This document shows positions 1,406 through 63,690 of a stretch of DNA of 64,000 nt, piece after piece. The DNA is from Octopus sinensis (taxonomy: Eukaryota), in contig NC_043000.1 in assembly GCF_006345805.1 (NCBI RefSeq), forward strand, positions 133,610,001 through 133,674,000, read 5' to 3'. The notes beneath the pieces were generated by a model that saw only the letters and a list, made by a program, of their open reading frames with translations, searched no databases and was not told where the DNA came from. Both the position numbers and the translations under genes were made by a program. Within the stretch, counting starts at the first letter, position 1; every line of letters begins with the position of its first letter.

Positions 1406-3759
1406 TGATTATAGATATGTCGGTAGTAATTAGTACTTTACCGATTCTGTGTTACTTTACAATTTACGTAAAGTGTAACACAAACGATTCCCTTTGCAAG
1501 ACGCAGAAAAAGTCAATACTTGAACGTAAACTTCTTCGAGCATTTAACAGCCAGAAGCGTAATTCCCAGGGATAGAACACATTATATATTCATGTGGTTT
1601 GATTTTATTTTCAAGTGCCTCTTATTAGGTGTGCTCATACATCATTGTATTTATATAATATCACTGAGAATCTGCTTCTATTCACTTTTACTGAGCCCTC
1701 CAAGAAATCGGTCTGCAAACCAAGAATATTTAGATACTTCTACGAAATATTGCTCCTTCTTTGTAAGTGTATGTGTATATATATATGTGTATGTGTTCAC
1801 ACAGTATCAAGATATGATATATTATGTATGTAACATGGTATAATTATAAACAGGGCAAATTTTAGCCATTTCTCCGCCGAGTGAAAAAATGAAACCTCCA
1901 GCTTCTATATCCAGACTATGAATTCCTATTCATACCAATAATAATTGGAGCACTAGGTTTTGTTAGTAAATATTTAAAGGAGATCTAGATAAACTGAGAT
2001 TTTCAGAAAGAGAAATTGACCGGCTGATTCGTACATTGCAAGTCCAATCTGTGAGTGGAACAGTAAAAATATGCAAGACTTTTCTCAAGTTTCAAATGTG
2101 AATTTGTCTGTATTAACTACATCCCAAAGATGAGCTTTGTATCTTTGTTGGAAACAGGCTCCCTCCTCAGTGGAAGATTTATAATAGATAAAAAATAGAA
2201 GAGACATACATACATAAATACATACATACATACATACATAAATACATACATACATACATACGTATCTATTACGGATGTACCTTAATATGTCGCTCACCAG
2301 TATTTCAACATCTTTGACATCAACAAAGCGTGAGAATCTAGATAAGCTGTCCGTGTTCAGGATTCAGATTACATCACAATACGTGCTAAGAAGTTTATCT
2401 CTGACACACATTTACTGCAGATTCTAGTGTGGCCCAAGTTGTGTTGTTATACTCCTCACACTGTTCCTCATGTGTATTCGATCTTTGTGATGTCGCCTCT
2501 CACCACACTCATTCCCATGCCGCTGATACCACCCATTATTCATTATTTGCCTTTCAAACACTGAAGTATGCCATCTACGAGCAACCTACACACGAAGTGC
2601 CATGACACATCCAAAATGCACCATCTCAATAGCAAGGTTATCAGAAATATCGCAGGTCTCAATCTGGGTTGATCAGGGCGAAAGATCGGGCAGAATAGTC
2701 AGAACGAAATTTAGTTATGACCCTTTACGTTCGAAGTTAAAATTCTGCCGTAATAAACTTTCCTCTATGCTCTGAGTTAAGATGCAGCCGATAAACTTTA
2801 ATTGGTCCTCCCAAGATTGAAAAATAAAGGAGCAGCTAAGAACTTGAGCAAATTTACTACTCCAATGAAACAACCAAATTAAGGGGGAAATGAAAAAGAG
2901 GAGGAATGACAACTTTTTAAAATATAATCAAACCAGATGTAACTTAAGTTGAGGATGTGCTCCAGATGTTCACCAAGGTGATGTAAGTACCTACAAGTTT
3001 TTCAATCAATTATTGCATCCTCCTTGAGAATAACAATATTTCTCTCATTAGGATCTATAGTTAATTGAATTTACTTCGTATATGTCGGATATCCCATCTT
3101 GGAATGAATCCAGATGTATCCCTTGAACTCGGAACATAAAAAAATGAAACTAGTGAATTCTGTTAGAGATTTCGTCCTGTTTTCAACCAATTCAACCAAA
3201 CAACTGTTCATCTGGCAAGAATAAATGATTTCTTACACAATACCATGAACTTATTGGGGAAGGTTGTAGTAGATTAAAACAATTCTAAGCATACTACTGG
3301 TACTTATTTCATCGGCCACAGCGTAAAGAAAAATGTTGCCTCTTGGGAATTGAACTCAGGACGTAGAGAGACGTAAGTAAATTAGGTTAAATGTTTTACC
3401 ATCGACCAATCCACCCCTGTAAGTGTGAGAAGAATGAGAAACAGAAATGACAACAATAACCGACTAAATATCTAATAACTTGTATGATAGTAGTTTGTCT
3501 CATCACTTAGTCTACCTTCGAATGAAAACGAAGTCTAAATAACTATATATACAATGGTATGAGGCTAATTTGTGTATGAGTCCTAAATCGAATGCTGAAA
3601 GACTTGGTGGTAAATTAACATTAAGAAGATAAGTGTGTCATCATGTTGTGATCTGTCAAAGAAGAAATATATTTTGGTTTTCAAAATGAATTACAAATAG
3701 AATACAAAACATATTAGGGAGATAATATCAAAATATAGTTGATTCTAATTTAGACACTA

Positions 3760-14448: not shown

Positions 14449-14661
14449 GGCGAGCTGGCAGAAACGTTAGCACGCCGGGCGAAATGCGTTGCCGTATTTC
14501 GTCTGCCGTTACGTTCCGAGTTCAAATTCCGCCGAGGTCGACTTTGCCTTTCATCCTTCCGGGGTCGATAAATTAAGTACCAGTTACGCACTGGGGTCGA
14601 TGTAATCGACTTAATCCGTTTGTCTGTCCTTGTTTGTCTCCTCTGTGGGTAGTAAAGAAAT
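14449..14661 (+). mobile_element. Family B SINE
   Basis: ggcgagctggcagaaacgttagcacgccgg...gttccgagttcaaattccgccgaggtcgac...gtagtaaagaaa. Confidence 0.9.
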
Positions 14662-18375: not shown

Positions 18376-19955
18376 ATATATGTATATATGTATATATATT
18401 TATATGTATATATGTATATATATTTATATGTATATATGTATATATATTTATATGTATATATGTATATATATTTATATGTATATGTATATATGTATATATA
18501 TTTATGTATATATATATGTGTATATATATTTATATATATGTGTGTATATATATTTATAATTATATATGTGTATATATGTATATATATTTATATATGTATA
18601 TATATTTATATTATATATATATATGTGTATATATGTATATATATTTATATATATATGCATATATATTGTATATATGTATATATATTTATATATTATACAT
18701 ATATATATGTGTATATATGTATATATATTTATATATATATATATGTGTGTAATATGTATATATATTTATATATATATATATATGTGTATATATTATATAT
18801 ATTTATATATATATATATATATATATTATATTAGTTGTATATATATTTATATATATATATATTATGTGTATATATATTATATATATATATATATATATGT
18901 TGTATATATGTATATATATTTATATATATAATATATATGTATATATATTTATATATATATATGTATATATATTTATATATATATATGTATATATATTTAT
19001 ATATATATATATATATATATGTGTATATATGTAATATATATATATATATATATATGTTGTGTGTATATATGTATATATTTATATATATATATATATATAT
19101 GTGTATATATGTATATATATTTTATATATATATATGTGGTGTATATATGTATATATTTATATATATATATATATATATATGTGTATATATGTTATATATG
19201 TATATATATATATACTATATGTGTATATATGTATTATATTTTTATATATATATATATATATGTGTATATATGTATATATATTTATATATATATATATATA
19301 TTCTATATGTGTATATATGTATATATATTTATATATATATATATATATATGTGTATATATGTATTATATTTATATATATATATTATATATATGTGTATTA
19401 TGTTATATATTTATTATATATATTATATAATGTGTATATATGTATATATATTTATATATATATATATATATGTGTATATATGTATATATATTTATATATA
19501 TATATATATATGTGTATATATGTATATATATTTATTATATATATATATATATGTGTATATATGTATATATATTTATATATATATATATATATATATGTGT
19601 GTATATATGTATATATATTTATATATATATAATATATATATGTGTGATATATGTATATATTTATATATATATATATATAATATATTGTGTATATATTATA
19701 TATATTTATATATATATATATATATGTGTATATATGTATATATATTTATATATATATATATATGTGTATATATGTATATATATTTATATTATTATATATA
19801 TATATATATATGTGTATATATGTGTATATATATATATATTATATATATATTATGTGTTATATATGTGTTATATATATTATATATATATATATGTATATAT
19901 ATTTATATATATATATATATATATGTTATATATTTATATATATATATATAATGTA

Positions 19956-19987
<32 letters not shown>

Positions 19988-21297
19988 GTGTATATATGTA
20001 TATATATTTATATATATATATGTGTATATATGTATAATATATTTATATATATATATATGTGTGTATATATGTATATATATTTATATATATATTATGTGTG
20101 TAATATGTATATATTTATATATATATATATGTGTGTTATATGTATATATATTTATATATATATGTGTGTATATATTGTATATATATTTTATATAATATAT
20201 ATATATATGTGTATATATGTATATATATTATATATTATATGTGTATATATGTATATATATTATATATTGTGTGTATATATGTTATATATATTCTATATAT
20301 ATGTTGTATATATGTATATATATTTATAATATATTGTGTATATATGTATATATATTTTATATATATAGTTGTTATATATGTATATATTTTATATATATAA
20401 TATATTGTATATATGTATATATATTTATATATTATATTTGTATATATGTATATATATTTATATATATATATGTGTAATATTAATATATTTATATATATAT
20501 GTGTATATTGTATATATATTTATATATATAATTATATGTATATATGTTATATATTTATTATATATATATGTGATATATGTATATATATTTATATATTATA
20601 TATGTGTATATATGTATATATATTTATATATATATATTTTATAATGTATATATATTTATTATTATATCTATGTGTATATATGTATATATATTTATATATA
20701 TATATATGTGTTAATATTTATAATATATTTATATATATATAATATATGTGTAATATGTATATATTTTATATATATTATATATTATGATGTATATATGTAT
20801 ATATATTATATATATATATATGTGTATATATGTATATATATTTATATATATATATATATATGTTATATATGTATATATATTTATTATATATATATGTTAT
20901 ATATGTATATATATTTATATATATATATATTATGTATATATGTATATATATTTATATATATATATATGTGTATATATGTATATATTTTAATATATATATG
21001 TGTATATATGTATATATATTTATATATATATATGTGTATATATGTATATATTTATATATATAATATATATGTGTATATATGTATATATATTTATTATATA
21101 TATATATATATGTGTATATGTATATATATTTATATATTATATATATATGTGTATATATGTATATATATTTATATATATATATATATGTGTATATATGTAT
21201 ATATATTTATATATATATATGTGTATATATGTATATATATTTATATATATATGTGTGTGTATATATGTATATATATATATATGTGTGTGTGTGTGTA
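18376..21297. repeat. ~2.9-kb AT-rich satellite; starts as a 24-bp unit (ATATGTATATATGTATATATATTT) and decays to irregular units
   Basis: The 8-residue period YVYMYIYL in the ORF translation equals 24 bp. All ORFs here are artefacts. Confidence 0.95.
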
Positions 21298-22619
21298 TTA
21301 GTTTCAGTCTGTATCACATTACTTAAAATTTGACAGAAATGGAAAACTCTTGATTGCTTGTGTTCTTGGTTCCAAATTTTAGATTTTCATGGAAACAAAT
21401 AAAAATTAAAATTCATTGCTGTTTTCAAAAATTAGACACACTTGACCAAATAGCTAATGTATATGAGAATCAGTTCATAGTTCTGGAATTCAAACACACT
21501 CTGTTTATATTTATTTCTTTTTAGCTCCCTTAATTCTTTTCCCTCGCCAGCAATCTTGCTATCGTATACAAAGGCATAAATAGCGTCCTTTCAACCAGAA
21601 ATATCTTTCCATCAGTCAGTGAGCACTAGCATTAAATCTTATAACATCAACAGAGTCCTTGCAGATGTATTTATATATGTTGTGCATTTTGCACGCTATT
21701 AAATTAAGCAAAGGTAAATTATTACAAGCGGGTATTTATTTTCTAGTCATCAGTAATTTCATTGTATTGACTCCTGATTGTAAATCCCTTCCCCTTACAT
21801 TGTATTTCTTTATTTTCTCAAAATCTTTCCTCACAATAATTTCACAAGTTCTATTTTCCAAATTATATTTTCCCTACTGTTTGGCATTTATGATTTGCAT
21901 TTATCATATATACGTTTCCTCTTATTAAATCTTTTTAGAATAGTATATCCATTCTAATTATATCTCATTATATATTTCTCATTTCTTGTTTTAAAAAACT
22001 GTTACTCTAGAGACTGTCTCGTCTGCTCATCATTGTCTTTCATTTTATTTTTTAAATATGCTCCGCGTATTTTGTGATTTAATACTTTGAACCTAATGAA
22101 CACTGACAACTGGAAATGCTTGTCTCATGAATAAATGAACCTGATATGAAGAAATATTAGAAAACCGAAAGAATCGCAAACTTGATAAAAGGCAAAAACA
22201 AAACGAAAAACTTACAGTGACTATTAATTGGAGAGGTTGCAAGGTTAAAACTTCTTCAATCATTCATGTAAAATGCATTACGGAAAGTCAACTCCTGAAA
22301 TATTAAATAAATTAGTTAATTAATGCGAATTTTGATTTGAAGTGATACAAAATACTAGAGTACTATAATATTTCGGAGAAATAAAACCGATTGTATAAAA
22401 AATAATAAATGGCTAACAACTACCTTCTAAAATTTGTTTCTGAAACATTTTATGAAATGTCCTCTCTACAAGCCATAAGCCAAACGGCTATTCTCATATT
22501 TATCAATCAAACTGTATACAACAATTAAAAAATGCCCTCGTCTTCTCTCTCCCTCACGGAATGTTCATAACACGCACTAACACTTTACAAATTCAAATAT
22601 TAAAATGTTTCAATATTGG

Positions 22620-25649: not shown

Positions 25650-26065
25650 AAGGTGGTGAGCTAGCAGAATCGTTAGCACGCCGGACGAAATGCTTAGCCG
25701 TATTTCGTCTGCCGCTACGTTCTGAGTTCAAATTCCGCCGAGGTCGACTTTGCCTTTCATCCTTTCGGGGTCGATAAATTAAGTACCAGTTACGCACTGA
25801 GGTCGATATAATCGACTTAATCCGTTTGTCTGTCCTTGTTTGTCTTCTCTGTGTTTAGACCCTTGTGGGCAATAAAGAAATAGGTATTTTGTCTGCCGCT
25901 ACGTTCTGAGTTCAAATTCCGCCGAGGTCAACTTTGCCCTTCATCCTTTTGGGGTCGATTAAATAAGTACCAGTTTCGCACTGGGGTCAATGTAATCAAC
26001 TTAATCCGTTTGTGGTCCTTGTTTCTCCTCTCTGTGTTTAGCCCCTTGTGGGTAGTAAAGAAATA
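25650..26065 (+). mobile_element. Family B SINE tandem dimer (full unit plus 5'-shortened unit) with an 18-bp TSD
   Basis: GGTAAAGTAAGTTAACTT at 25632-25649 and 26066-26083; the second unit begins near 25886. Confidence 0.9.
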
Positions 26066-26544
26066 GGTAAAGTAAGTTAACTTCCAATAGTCCTTTAGAC
26101 ATAACAATGTATAACAATTAACAGCAATAAGTAGGTAAAACTAGTTATTTTCATGTGTAACACAGTAAAGTTACTATGTTTGTTGTTGGACTCAGAAAAT
26201 AAGTCCCACTTTTGCCATGTCATTCATTTACATCTCACAATTCAATCTAAAATTCGCGATGCCACATTATTATACTATTAAGCATAGTTCTGAAAATTTG
26301 GATCCAAATGCAATTAATTTCGAAGTCTACTTTTGCAAAAGTAACTTACCGTGTTTGCCGACATATAAGACCCACTTTTCTATTTTTTAAATGTATCAAA
26401 AAATTGCCCTGCGTCTAATGCGATCGTATTACGGATGGGAGACCAAGTGCCATAAACTAAGGAGCCGGGTAAGCATACGTTTGCTTGGTATAATAATTGT
26501 TACTAATAATCTAATATTGAAAACAAGCTAAAATATCAGCCTTT

Positions 26545-38538: not shown

Positions 38539-38860
38539 ACTGTATATTAACAGTTATCGCCAAGCTAATATGGCAGTCCATAAATATAGGACGTAAGCTG
38601 TCGTTGATTAGCTCCAAGAGGCCATCGCCTATAGCTAGCTATATGACACACGAACGTGTGTCCATTATAACCTTCGAACAGGGGAAGTTAGCCTCTTCTC
38701 CTTGCTGGTCAAGCATCTGCAGACATGTTTCAGGGTATTTACCCTTTAGCAATGCAGAGTAGCCGAACCCAGCAGGCGTCGCTGCTGACCGTCTGTTCGA
38801 AGGAATATTTACCTAATTTCAGTGGAATACATCCACTGGTCTTCAAAAATGGAAATATTA
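38539..38860 (-). mobile_element. ~320-bp hammerhead-bearing unit (left arm of a head-to-head pair)
   Basis: 38539-38711 is the inverted counterpart of 41234-41406. Contains the HHR at 38716-38758, enclosed by ccttcgaacag/ctgttcgaagg (38671-38803). Confidence 0.8.
38716..38758 (-). ncRNA. Type I hammerhead ribozyme, U3-A8 core variant with A6C
   Basis: Minus strand: TCTGCA-TTGCTAA-AGGG TAAATA CCCT-GAAA-CATGT-C-TGCAGA. Stems of 6 and 4 bp, palindromic stem III ACATGT, GUC triplet. Confidence 0.8.
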
Positions 38861-39216
38861 TTATTTATTACACACATGTGAGTGAGAACACTTTGAGATA
38901 TTTTTGGTATCTAACATACGTCAGATACTGCGAGCGCTGCTTCTGATTGGTCAATCCATGGTGATGACCCGAGGTTACGGTGACGGCACTACTTTTGTCA
39001 TTCATAAGTTACAACTAAACTTTCACGAGCAGGTAGAATGTAGCCATGTAATTAAACAAACATACTATCTTTTTTATACCAGATATCACTTAAAGTCATA
39101 TACACATAAAATATAAAAATTTCTGGTCGTAATTCAATTTTTTGTTGCCAAAAAAATCACAACATATATCGTCTGCGCGTCGATACTCTTGCAGTGCAGG
39201 TAGATCTATCAACAAG

Positions 39217-40800
39217 ATGGCTACTGTTGTCGATATCAAGGTGAATGATTTTGTTAAGATTGATGGTAAAGATGGGGGAAGAGTGTTATCCGTTGTTCAA
39301 ACTCTTGGAACATACAGAATGTTCAATGTAAAGATCAATACTGGCCAAGTTCGACATGTTGCTGGATACAGGTTAACAAAGGTACCTGAAACAGTGTCAT
39401 CGACGAGTGGATTGTCATCGAACCCTACATTTAACATCCCTGATGAGGTGTACAATGATCTTCTTCGTGACGATTTCTTTGATGATAGCCATAATGATCT
39501 TGAATTTCAACCGAGGTATGATCATTCTGGAATAGATAAATTCGTTCAAGGTAATCAAAATAAAAACACTCTTCGGGAAACAAACTATGATGTTAAACGA
39601 TTGTTTGCTTTCATGGCGACAAATGGCGACACGTGTCCAATTGAATCTATCGACAAAAGCGAACTTCGTGACATTCTGTGTACTTTCTTTATCTCGTTGC
39701 GAAAGCCGGACAGTAGCAACTATGAACCTTCATCTTTGAGGGGAATGTTATCCAGTATTGAAAGATATCTGAAGTCAAAACACTACTCGACGTCACTATT
39801 CTCGGACGGGACATTCGTGAAACTACATGACGTACTAAAAACAAAGCAAAAGCTGTTGAAAAGTGAAGGAATGGGAAACCTACCTCGACGCGCGGAATCT
39901 CTCTCCGACGATGATATCAACAAGCTATGGGAATGTGACCAGCTCGGTCCGAACACACCTGAATCCATCCTCAACACGCTATGGTGGAACAACACCGTTC
40001 ACTTTGGTATCCGGAGTGTCAAACCTCACAACGACATGCGATGGGGCGACGTTTCTTTGCATGTTGACAATGAAGGCAAGGAATTCCTTCAGTTTAGGGA
40101 GCGACAGTCCCAAACTTGTCAAGGTGATAATCTCGACCATGCACGTAACATCTACCCAAAAGCATGGGCGACGAATGATGGGCGTTGTCCAGTTAACCTG
40201 TACAAGCGTTTTGCTGATCTGAGACCATCAGATTATTCATCGCCGAATTCACCATTTTATTTGGCCACCAACTGCAAAGATGCCTCCCATTCTCATCCCT
40301 GGTTTAAACGTCAACCGTTCGGTGTCAACAAACTAGGTACAATTATGAAAAGGATGGCTAAATCAGCTGGTTTGGACAATCGAAGATTCACGAACCATTC
40401 AGCACGCAAATACCTTATGCAGAAGCTCGCTGACCAGAACATTCCTCCAACTGAAATCATGCAGATATCTAGACATCGTAATGTGCAAAGCATCAATAGT
40501 TACAGCAATATTTCCATGGATCGTCATCGTGCCATCAGTAACATCCTTAGTAGCAACAACGACCAGCCTGGTTCGCTTGTACCTCCGTCTCACACAGCAG
40601 CAGCGAGTACAAGTGAACTCCCCTCCACCGTCAACGTTACGTCGAGTCAATCTCGGAACGCTGTCACTTGCTTTGGTTCATTGCACTCCATTTTCTCGGC
40701 TCCAATATATGGGGGAACAATCAATGTGAACTTCTTTGGTTCAGATGCAAAGCGACCTCGTCTGACATTGCTACTCGAAAACATGTTTGAGTATTATTAA
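39217..40800 (+). CDS. Crypton-like tyrosine recombinase (DUF3504 / KIAA1958-like), 527 aa from the ATG at 39217
   Basis: Motifs FFISLRKPD..YEPSSL, HFGIRS (R), CPVNLY, FTNHSARK (HxxR), ISRHRN (H) and SINSYS (Y). ATG context aacaagATGG; the track start at 39142 is a TTG. AATAAA at 41038. Confidence 0.92.
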   Translation: MATVVDIKVNDFVKIDGKDGGRVLSVVQTLGTYRMFNVKINTGQVRHVAGYRLTKVPETVSSTSGLSSNPTFNIPDEVYNDLLRDDFFDDSHNDLEFQPRYDHSGIDKFVQGNQNKNTLRETNYDVKRLFAFMATNGDTCPIESIDKSELRDILCTFFISLRKPDSSNYEPSSLRGMLSSIERYLKSKHYSTSLFSDGTFVKLHDVLKTKQKLLKSEGMGNLPRRAESLSDDDINKLWECDQLGPNTPESILNTLWWNNTVHFGIRSVKPHNDMRWGDVSLHVDNEGKEFLQFRERQSQTCQGDNLDHARNIYPKAWATNDGRCPVNLYKRFADLRPSDYSSPNSPFYLATNCKDASHSHPWFKRQPFGVNKLGTIMKRMAKSAGLDNRRFTNHSARKYLMQKLADQNIPPTEIMQISRHRNVQSINSYSNISMDRHRAISNILSSNNDQPGSLVPPSHTAAASTSELPSTVNVTSSQSRNAVTCFGSLHSIFSAPIYGGTINVNFFGSDAKRPRLTLLLENMFEYY

Positions 40801-41074
40801 AGTTATTGAAGATTCAATCTGTATTATGTATTTCTTGAACGTGAACTTGAATGTTAACAAAATGTTAAATAGTCATCAGTTATCAGTCATTTCACCTGAA
40901 AACTTAGCGCTATAAAGTCGGACTATCTTCCTGCGGCATGACATCTTTTACAGTTACACATTGTGACGTCACTGACGTGAAATCAAGCTGTATTCATGTG
41001 CGCTTCAACATGATGTGAAGAATTTAATTATTAGATTAATAAAATATGGTCGTTTATTCGTGTGTAATAAATAA

Positions 41075-41218
41075 AATACCAAACTCATTCCCTATGGATA
41101 CCGTATTTATTACAACTCGTGGCTTGTAAACGTATCTAACTCGCTTTCGCTCGTTAGATACGTTTACAAGCCACTCGTTGTAATAAATACGGTATCCATA
41201 GGGAACTCGTTTGGTATT
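41075..41218 (-). other. 144-nt terminal hairpin; minus strand has three tandem G.A pairs and a GCGAAAGC cap
   Basis: Arms 41075-41140 and 41153-41218 are Watson-Crick paired except at recurring CTCG motifs. Confidence 0.9.
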
Positions 41219-41233
41219 GTCTATTTCTAAATC

Positions 41234-41406
41234 TGATCAGCAAGGGGGAGCGGCTGACCTCCTCTGTTCGAAGGTTATAATGGACACAGGTGCGTGTGTC
41301 ATATAGCTAGCTAGAGGCGATGGCCTCTTGGAGCTAATCAACGGCAGCTTACGTCCTATATTTATGGACTGCCATATTAGCTTGGCAATAACTGTTAATA
41401 TCCAGT
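41234..41406 (+). mobile_element. Right (inverted) arm of the HHR unit at 38539-38860
   Basis: 173 bp with about 13 mismatches to the left arm; begins ~10 nt 3' of the predicted cleavage site. Confidence 0.85.
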
Positions 41407-41734: not shown

Positions 41735-41960
41735 CTTTGGTCAGCGCAAGATACGAGCTGGACGAAATGCTTAGCAGTATTTCGTCTGCCGTTACGTTCT
41801 GAGTTCAAATTCCGCCGAGGTCGACTTTGCTTTCATCATTTCGAGATCGATAAATTAAGTACCAGTTACGCACTGGGGTCGTTGTAATCGATTTGATCCC
41901 TTTGTCTGTCCGTGTTTGTCCCCTCTGTGTTTGGTCCCTTATGGGCAATAAAGAAATAGG
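41735..41960 (+). mobile_element. Family B SINE
   Basis: Core and tail (gggcaataaagaaatagg). Confidence 0.85.
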
Positions 41961-63459: not shown

Positions 63460-63690
63460 TTTTTATTTCTTTATTGCCCACAAGGGGCTAAACATAGAGG
63501 GGACAAACAAGGACAGACAAACGGATTAAGTCGATTACATCGACCCCAGTGCGTAACTAGTTACTTAATTTATCGACCCCGAAAGGATGAAAAGCAAAGT
63601 CGACCTCGACGGAATTTGAACTTAGAACGGAGCGGCAGACGAAATACTGCTAAGCATTTCGCCCAGCGTGCTAACGTTTCTGCCAGCTAA
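63460..63690 (-). mobile_element. Family B SINE, full length
   Basis: Tail atttctttattgcccacaaggggctaaac through head gtttctgccagct. Confidence 0.9.

Follow-up and report, generated by a model that had tools for sequence, protein, structure and literature searches.

Some tyrosine recombinases (YRs) act on folded single strands in a strand-specific way, as in two bacterial systems. Integron attC sites, recombined by IntI, are imperfect palindromes conserved in structure rather than in sequence; folding of one strand rebuilds a two-box site with an unpaired centre, the crossover lies in the foot, and unpaired features with purine skew on the recombined strand set strand selectivity (PMC5027507, PMC4792948). 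In the attP(+) hairpin of CTXphi, a filamentous phage with an obligatory single-stranded genome that uses the host XerCD recombinases, two inverted core-like sites pair within a single strand to form one site with a mismatched central region, which permits exchange of a single strand pair (PMC3442271, PMC3089051). Among eukaryotes, the Cryptons are DNA transposons in which a single ORF encodes a tyrosine recombinase; no transposition mechanism has been shown experimentally for any of them, and the accepted picture is that of a circle recombining through direct repeats of 4-6 bp (Goodwin et al. 2003; Kojima and Jurka 2011, PMC3212892). The reference survey states that no terminal repeats were found in animal Cryptons and mentions no hairpin (PMC3212892), a 2026 paper on DUF3504 CryptonA elements reports none either (PMC13465315), and our full-text searches for a Crypton hairpin, palindrome, stem-loop or cruciform found no description in the library searched. 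Here we describe a CryptonA-type element of an octopus that ends in a long interrupted hairpin with a pronounced strand asymmetry, and ask whether comparison with related elements can help in understanding the role of this structure.

The element lies in a window of 64,000 nucleotides of Octopus sinensis DNA (GCF_006345805.1, NC_043000.1, positions 133,610,001 to 133,674,000), to which all coordinates refer. A first-pass annotation, made from the sequence alone, had noted a terminal hairpin at 41075-41218 in which all interruptions of a 66-bp stem fall at CTCG motifs repeated on one strand, such that the minus strand would carry tandem G.A pairs and a GAAA cap, and had inferred that this Crypton may recombine or replicate through a folded minus-strand single-stranded substrate. 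The observation is confirmed. The arms, 41075-41140 and 41153-41218, are each 66 nt long, are 92% complementary and are separated by 12 nt, and every interruption is where that annotation had placed it: TCA at 41085-41087 faces CTC at 41206-41208, TC at 41117-41118 faces TC at 41175-41176, and TC at 41141-41142 faces TC at 41151-41152, so that stems of 10, 29, 22 and 2 bp are separated by TC/TC bubbles. On the antisense strand these sites become CGAG facing CGAG three times, with an additional G.T wobble at the outer site, and the apex at 41141-41152, TC-GC-TTTC-GC-TC on the sense strand, reads GA-GCGAAAGC-GA, with the cap proper at 41143-41150. CTCG occurs 5 times in the 144 nt and CGAG 0 times, whereas the window-wide rate predicts 0.24 occurrences (Poisson P about 6e-6), and 20 of the 22 unpaired or mismatched positions are pyrimidines on the + strand.

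As single-stranded DNA, the hairpin is predicted to fold at -64.8 kcal/mol on the + strand and at -66.6 kcal/mol on the - strand, compared with averages of about -11 to -12 for shuffled sequences (z = -19.6 and -20.7, respectively; 0 of 200 shuffles folded as well). The nearest-neighbour model thus sees only a 1.8 kcal/mol preference for the minus strand, and across related families the differences are 0-4 kcal/mol and go in either direction, although the parameter set does not credit sheared G.A pairs. The claim that the hairpin is optimised for one strand therefore rests not on our energy calculations but on published chemistry, which shows that self-facing CGAG tetranucleotides form stable sheared G.A 'CGAG blocks' in DNA hairpins (PMC10085684) and that GCGAAAGC is an extraordinarily stable mini-hairpin (PMC13037366). 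Because tandem G.A pairs and GAAA loops are classic RNA motifs, a role in a transcript was also considered, either as a 3'-UTR or terminator structure or as a long hairpin RNA giving small RNAs, in which case the G.A pairs and a GNRA tetraloop would be features of an antisense RNA. A search of Rfam gave only matches to long miRNA-precursor models that are far below the gathering thresholds (mir-5880 at 41.9 bits against 97 and MIR6224 at 46.8 against 171) and reflect generic hairpin shape, so that we rejected them as identification. Furthermore, two overlapping AATAAA signals (41066-41071 and 41070-41075) lie immediately 5' of the foot in the octopus element, and the retention of the hairpin in copies without an ORF and its complementarity to the DNA termini, both described below, fit a DNA role; the RNA scenario appears very unlikely.

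The hairpin belongs to a 2.36-kb transposon (38865-41224). The ORF at 39217-40800 (+) encodes a DUF3504/CryptonA-type tyrosine recombinase of 527 aa counted from the ATG (Pfam DUF3504, 2.4e-25; Phage_integrase, 3.2e-7; QRICH1), with R266, R397, H420 and Y429 invariant among 9 homologues and H394 present in the window protein, that is, with the catalytic residues intact. The closest named protein, from Octopus sinensis, is 96% identical, and the closest solved relative is the domesticated QRICH1. The open frame that contains this ORF (39133-40800) is the only long one in the element, the other frames listed being short, overlapping ones with nothing to mark them as genes, so that no reverse transcriptase, DDE transposase, replication protein or HUH domain accompanies the recombinase. 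In the 2.7-Gb genome, the hairpin gives 359 candidate loci and the 5' end gives a nearly equal 355, of which at least 40 were scored as copies; the element thus has about 350 copies. Comparison of 30 copies with the window, together with the 5' boundaries of 28 copies and the right boundaries of 32 copies, defines the ends as TTATTACAC... and ...GGTATTCTCTAT: the element runs from TTATTACACAC (38865-38875), with conservation from TTATTAC onward and variable flanks, to GGTATT(C/G)TCTAT, its terminal hexamer at 41219-41224 being GTCTAT in this copy and CTCTAT in most copies, and the hairpin thus ends 4-6 nt before the 3' boundary. The flanks are AT-rich (TATATAT or TATTTAT) and show no fixed duplication, the pattern expected for site-specific recombination through microhomology. 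Most copies are non-autonomous derivatives of roughly 350-700 bp; all those examined keep only about 136 nt of the 5' end and about 212 nt of the 3' end, including the whole hairpin. One locus is a head-to-tail array with a 633-bp period and the junction GGTATTCTCTAT|TTATTACACAC (CTCTAT|TTATTAC); it is the only such junction found in the genome, and the only indication here of an excised circular intermediate.

The first-pass annotation had named conservation of the G.A positions and of the cap among Crypton families with covarying stems as a test of its reading, and we carried out this comparison on the DNA around eleven loci (designated L061 to L081 below) that encode recombinases 36-62% identical to that of the window. 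These come from cephalopod-like ENA assemblies, Littorina saxatilis (two families), Mytilus edulis, Mizuhopecten yessoensis and the hemichordate Ptychodera flava; two of the loci are one family. All eleven carry a long imperfect hairpin 160-480 nt after the stop codon. The stems are largely rewritten but remain paired: in a five-family alignment, 99.5% of cells are paired, 42 of 52 pairs changed on both sides, 0 of 500 shuffles reached the observed values and no slid register comes close, whereas segment lengths are conserved at 10-12, 29-30, 22-23 and 2-3 bp. In ten of the eleven loci, CTCG or its variants T-TC-G and C-TC-A face each other on the ORF-sense strand, with no facing GA/GA there; the eleventh, L078, has none because its sites are fully paired. 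The outer TC/TC site has equivalents in L061, L063, L064 and L079, and the middle site is conserved in L061, L062, L064, L067, L079 and L080. Across the 12 loci including the window there are roughly 22-25 tandem TC/TC sites and no GA/GA on the sense strand, all sites fit the pattern of self-facing 5'-Y-GA-R-3' tetranucleotides on the antisense strand, and pyrimidine-pyrimidine mismatches number 69 against 24 purine-purine. Inside the stems there are about 12 G.T and about 11 A.C mispairs on the sense strand over single copies of the 12 loci, and the octopus family sequence, shared by most copies, has 2 A.C and 0 G.T, so that wobble counts, like energies, give no call of the folded strand. A more distant homologue in the octopus genome (L051, 34% identity) has no hairpin, and the feature is therefore specific to a lineage. 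The possibility that the palindrome is a neutral passenger that arose by chance inverted duplication might seem to be favoured by the deletion, insertion and flip variants tolerated in individual copies, but it is contradicted by the conservation of position, segment lengths and mismatch identity across recombinases down to 36% identity and at least three phyla-level host groups, and must be considered remote.

The test was thus positive for the G.A positions, whereas the cap tells a different story. The GCGAAAGC cap is present only in the octopus group and in one Littorina family (L062), which has the identical 14-nt apex, CTCGCTTTCGCTCG; other families have an apex of the type C-TC-GCC-NNN-GGC-TC-G, with GCC-AAA-GGC in L064 and GCC-TGC-GGC in L067, and L066 has GGT-AGA-ACC. 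Within the octopus family, a pattern census found about 167 copies with a complete centre, of which about 42-45 carry the central 12 nt flipped, so that GAGCGAAAGCGA lies on the sense strand. In 66 copies that were classified, the left-arm sites never change and the variants form a polar series, namely, centre flipped; centre flipped and the right-middle site converted to a perfect pair; and both of these plus the outer site converted. We considered recombinase-mediated inversion between the two inverted core-like sites and whole-hairpin flip-flop, as in rolling-hairpin replication, but rejected both because only the centre and the right arm are converted, from the inside outward, and the whole hairpin is never inverted; an inter-strand template switch fits better. 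Neither do the flipped copies represent one subfamily, because they occur in both subfamilies defined by linked diagnostic sites, so the flips are recurrent. In addition, a slippage deletion that removes the cap and the two inner sites is present at 33 or more dispersed loci, including ORF-bearing copies, so that the cap and inner stem are dispensable, at least in the short term. These data cut two ways. Conversion between the arms, which is frequent within the octopus family (classes F2 and F3), could by itself keep the arms complementary, without selection for folding; however, because conversion also erases the TC/TC bubbles, their persistence at the same positions and on the same strand, in ten of the eleven homologous loci as in the window, argues for selection on the bubbles themselves.

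A further anatomical feature emerged at the foot of the hairpin. The 14 nt at 41060-41073, GTGTGTAATAAATA, are the exact reverse complement of the head-to-tail junction TAT|TTATTACACAC, so that the 5' terminus is an inverted repeat of 41060-41070; the 15-nt exact inverted match between the 5' end and the bases just 5' of the foot was equalled by 0 of 300 shuffles. A match of 11-17 nt is significant in the window and in L061, L065, L079, L080 and L081 (p <= 0.007) and borderline in L067 (p about 0.05), the comparison leaving out L062, L063, L064, L066 and L078, whose 5' ends could not be located from single, possibly truncated copies. In a circle or tandem copy, the palindrome would therefore extend across the crossover point, with GTGTGTAATAAATA-A-AATACCAAAC pairing with GTTTGGTATT-CTC-TATTTATTACACAC, that is, with GTTTGGTATT-CTC-TAT|TTATTACACAC; the resulting CT bulge is also present in L061, L062 and L063, which conserve the terminal motif GTATTCTCTAT, with TCTAT in L064. 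Seen as duplex DNA, this is a core-like site at the junction plus a mirrored copy with a spacer 2 nt shorter on the other side of the hairpin; seen as a folded strand, it is a single duplex-like core site with an unpaired centre and the crossover 3-4 bp from the bulge, as a folded-strand recombination site predicts.

Nevertheless, a duplex mechanism is not excluded. In L067, the junction reads TGTGAGA-TTCTATT-TCTCACA, an ordinary core site with inverted arms, so that duplex recombination alone could suffice, with the six same-strand (A)CTCG motifs serving as arm-type binding sites for a host factor or for the N-terminal region of the recombinase, which has about 110 residues N-terminal to the SAM-like and catalytic region, and with the palindrome kept complementary by conversion. 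The canonical core with a 6-7 bp spacer readable at the junction, the demonstrably frequent conversion and the lack of a clear strand preference in the energies are all compatible with this view. However, independent duplex sites need not face each other exactly, whereas here every CTCG sits opposite another CTCG such that TC meets TC between two Watson-Crick pairs, a geometry that has meaning only in a fold; the sites survive homogenising conversion, and this model also does not explain why an inverted copy of the 5' terminus sits at the foot. We therefore regard the duplex array as the leading alternative, but an unlikely one.

The hypothesis that appears best able to accommodate these findings is that the hairpin is a conserved cis-acting part of the recombination site of one lineage of animal CryptonA elements that works as folded DNA in a strand-asymmetric way, although we consider the case for it to be only about evenly balanced. 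In this view, joining of the element ends would yield an interrupted palindrome of about 180 nt consisting, from foot to tip, of a 14-bp foot stem that contains the crossover point, a CT bulge, a 10-bp stem, three CTCG/CTCG sites separated by 29-bp and 22-bp stems, and a small cap. Folding of one strand, most likely the antisense strand, on which the interruptions would become stacked sheared G.A pairs and purine bulges, would rebuild a duplex-like core site with an unpaired centre for the recombinase and, acting as a splint, would bring the two termini side by side. What the analysis demonstrates is the anatomy of the hairpin, its conservation, the covariation of the stems, the strand bias of the mismatches and the retention of the structure in non-autonomous copies; that the folded form exists in vivo and is the substrate, that it is single-stranded rather than a cruciform, that the antisense strand is the active one, that a circle is involved, and that one strand pair is exchanged as in the attC or CTXphi reactions, are inferences from sequence, without direct evidence of single-stranded DNA, circles or cruciforms. 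The interpretation offered in the first-pass annotation is thus supported in part. Another possibility is that the hairpin is not the recombination substrate but a strand-specific origin or priming site, comparable to the single-strand origins of rolling-circle plasmids, that converts a single-stranded transposon intermediate into duplex DNA. The long, imperfect, orientation-specific palindrome with conserved structure rather than sequence, and the polar variants suggesting that DNA synthesis often runs through a folded form, are compatible with such a role, but no replication protein is encoded, and the foot complementarity to both termini and the distance of 4-6 nt to the crossover point tie the structure to recombination, so that this scenario appears improbable. 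Against the alternative explanations as a group, the exact facing geometry of the CTCG sites and the foot complementarity count most.

A bolder and more tentative reading, plausible but unproven, is that this lineage transposes through a folded single strand: the antisense strand of the hairpin, stiffened by CGAG blocks, would present a bulged core site, a guide or splint sequence at its foot would align the termini, and the recombinase would exchange one strand pair, with replication finishing the job. This would be the first attC/CTXphi-like single-strand reaction by a tyrosine recombinase in a eukaryotic transposon, would extend such recombination from bacterial integrons and filamentous phages to animals, and would bear on the ancestry of the domesticated DUF3504 genes (ZMYM2-4, QRICH1, KCTD1). 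The conserved, strand-asymmetric hairpin of about 150 nt, with its foot complementary to both termini, provides a concrete cis-element that makes the Crypton mechanism directly testable, and a compact, structure-defined recombination site that may be useful as a tool.

How, then, does this structure compare with those already described? With the subterminal hairpins of IS200/IS605 (IS608) and the 3' hairpins of Helitrons, it shares a location a few nucleotides from the end, a short sequence 5' of the foot that base-pairs (here, is predicted to pair) with the cleavage-site region and, if the folded-strand hypothesis holds, a strand-specific logic of transposition; however, those elements use HUH nucleases, and their hairpins are 16-25 nt long with 4-nt guides and non-canonical pairing. 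The CGAG-block hairpins and the GCGAAAGC mini-hairpin are identical in sequence to the antisense strand of the octopus element, but are short oligonucleotide or promoter motifs, whereas here they punctuate a stem of about 66 bp in a mobile element, with a cap that is not universal. As in CTXphi attP(+), two inverted core-like sites lie roughly 100-150 nt apart and would pair in a folded strand to form one site with a mismatched centre, but CTXphi relies on host recombinases and on its single-stranded genome, and no source of single-stranded DNA is known for a Crypton. As in attC, structure is conserved while sequence diverges, folding of one strand would, in silico, rebuild a core site with an unpaired centre and the crossover in the foot, unpaired features are purine-rich on one strand and the distal stem-loop is variable and partly dispensable; here, however, the asymmetry is made of 2x2 self-facing CGAG blocks rather than extrahelical bases, no G.T skew was found over the single copies compared, the recombinase is not IntI-like, the host is an animal, and recombination of a single strand is a conjecture. 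Finally, with the Cryptons as described, the element shares the single ORF for a DUF3504/CryptonA-type recombinase, the lack of a fixed target-site duplication, the short AT-rich microhomology of the termini with the target, the excess of non-autonomous derivatives over autonomous copies and a head-to-tail junction compatible with a circular intermediate, so that it is a bona fide Crypton; what sets this lineage apart is the subterminal hairpin of 120-160 nt and the inverted repeat of 11-17 nt between the 5' end and the hairpin foot.

In about a quarter of the octopus copies, the central 12 nt of the hairpin are flipped, as seen in copies L035, L043, L048 and L068-L077 of the octopus genome (the affected region is equivalent to window 41141-41208). 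The conversion is always polar, that is, only the centre and the right arm change, from the inside outward, whereas the left arm never changes, and the flips recur in both subfamilies. This pattern looks like frequent inter-strand template switching in the palindrome, be it in place or during transposition. Furthermore, a slippage deletion between TTGTAA repeats, equivalent to a deletion of window ~41125-41177, removes the cap and two of the three mismatch sites in copies L032, L033, L042 and L060 as well as in 33 pattern hits in the octopus genome. This variant is dispersed at 33 or more loci, and the copy at L033 has an open 588-aa frame; in five of the 33 hits, the remaining loop motif is CGAG instead of CTCG. 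In addition, one copy (L055) carries a 75-nt insertion exactly at the hairpin apex, equivalent to window ~41139-41154.

The only head-to-tail tandem array of the family in the genome (loci L006, L082 and L083; contig C1:107,572,8xx-107,574,2xx) consists of three copies of an internally deleted element with a 633-bp period, and it is this array that provides the junction sequence CTCTAT|TTATTAC. The terminal CTCTAT (equivalent to window 41219-41224) varies in length between copies as CTCT(CT)nAT, as seen at the 3' boundaries of copies L007-L010 and L020-L022; this is dinucleotide slippage, or variable crossover, right at the recombination point. With regard to the surroundings of the Crypton copy in the window, 173-nt inverted repeats that are 92% complementary (window 38539-38711 and 41234-41406) flank this copy, which appears to be nested inside another element that has long terminal inverted repeats. 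Pieces of the right-hand flank (about 41757-41960) are repeated elsewhere in the window, for example, near 25680-26069, 14474-14647 and 63464-63667. The stretch at ~18500-21500 of the window, with 8% G+C and a GC skew near +0.95, is a very AT-rich repeat with G but almost no C on the + strand and is unrelated to the present finding.

In three of the loci that encode homologous recombinases (L065:4717-4807, L080:4433-4587 and L081:5682-5857), a second, different long hairpin lies immediately downstream of the first and also has 2x2 mismatches at CTCG/CGAG-type tetranucleotides; this second hairpin may belong to an adjacent non-autonomous relative or may be a tandem remnant. Among the annotated proteins, P0035 of Octopus vulgaris (608 aa) has DUF4817, PAX and HTH-type Pfam domains and shares 88% identity with the Crypton recombinase over 19% of the query; it is probably a gene model that swallowed a Crypton fragment. 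In two relatives (L061:~3725-3751 and L079:~2779-2808), the DNA just outside the presumed 5' end resembles the element's own 3' end (GGTTATTCTAT and CCATGAAGTGAA), which could reflect either a target site that mimics the junction or a remnant of a tandem copy.
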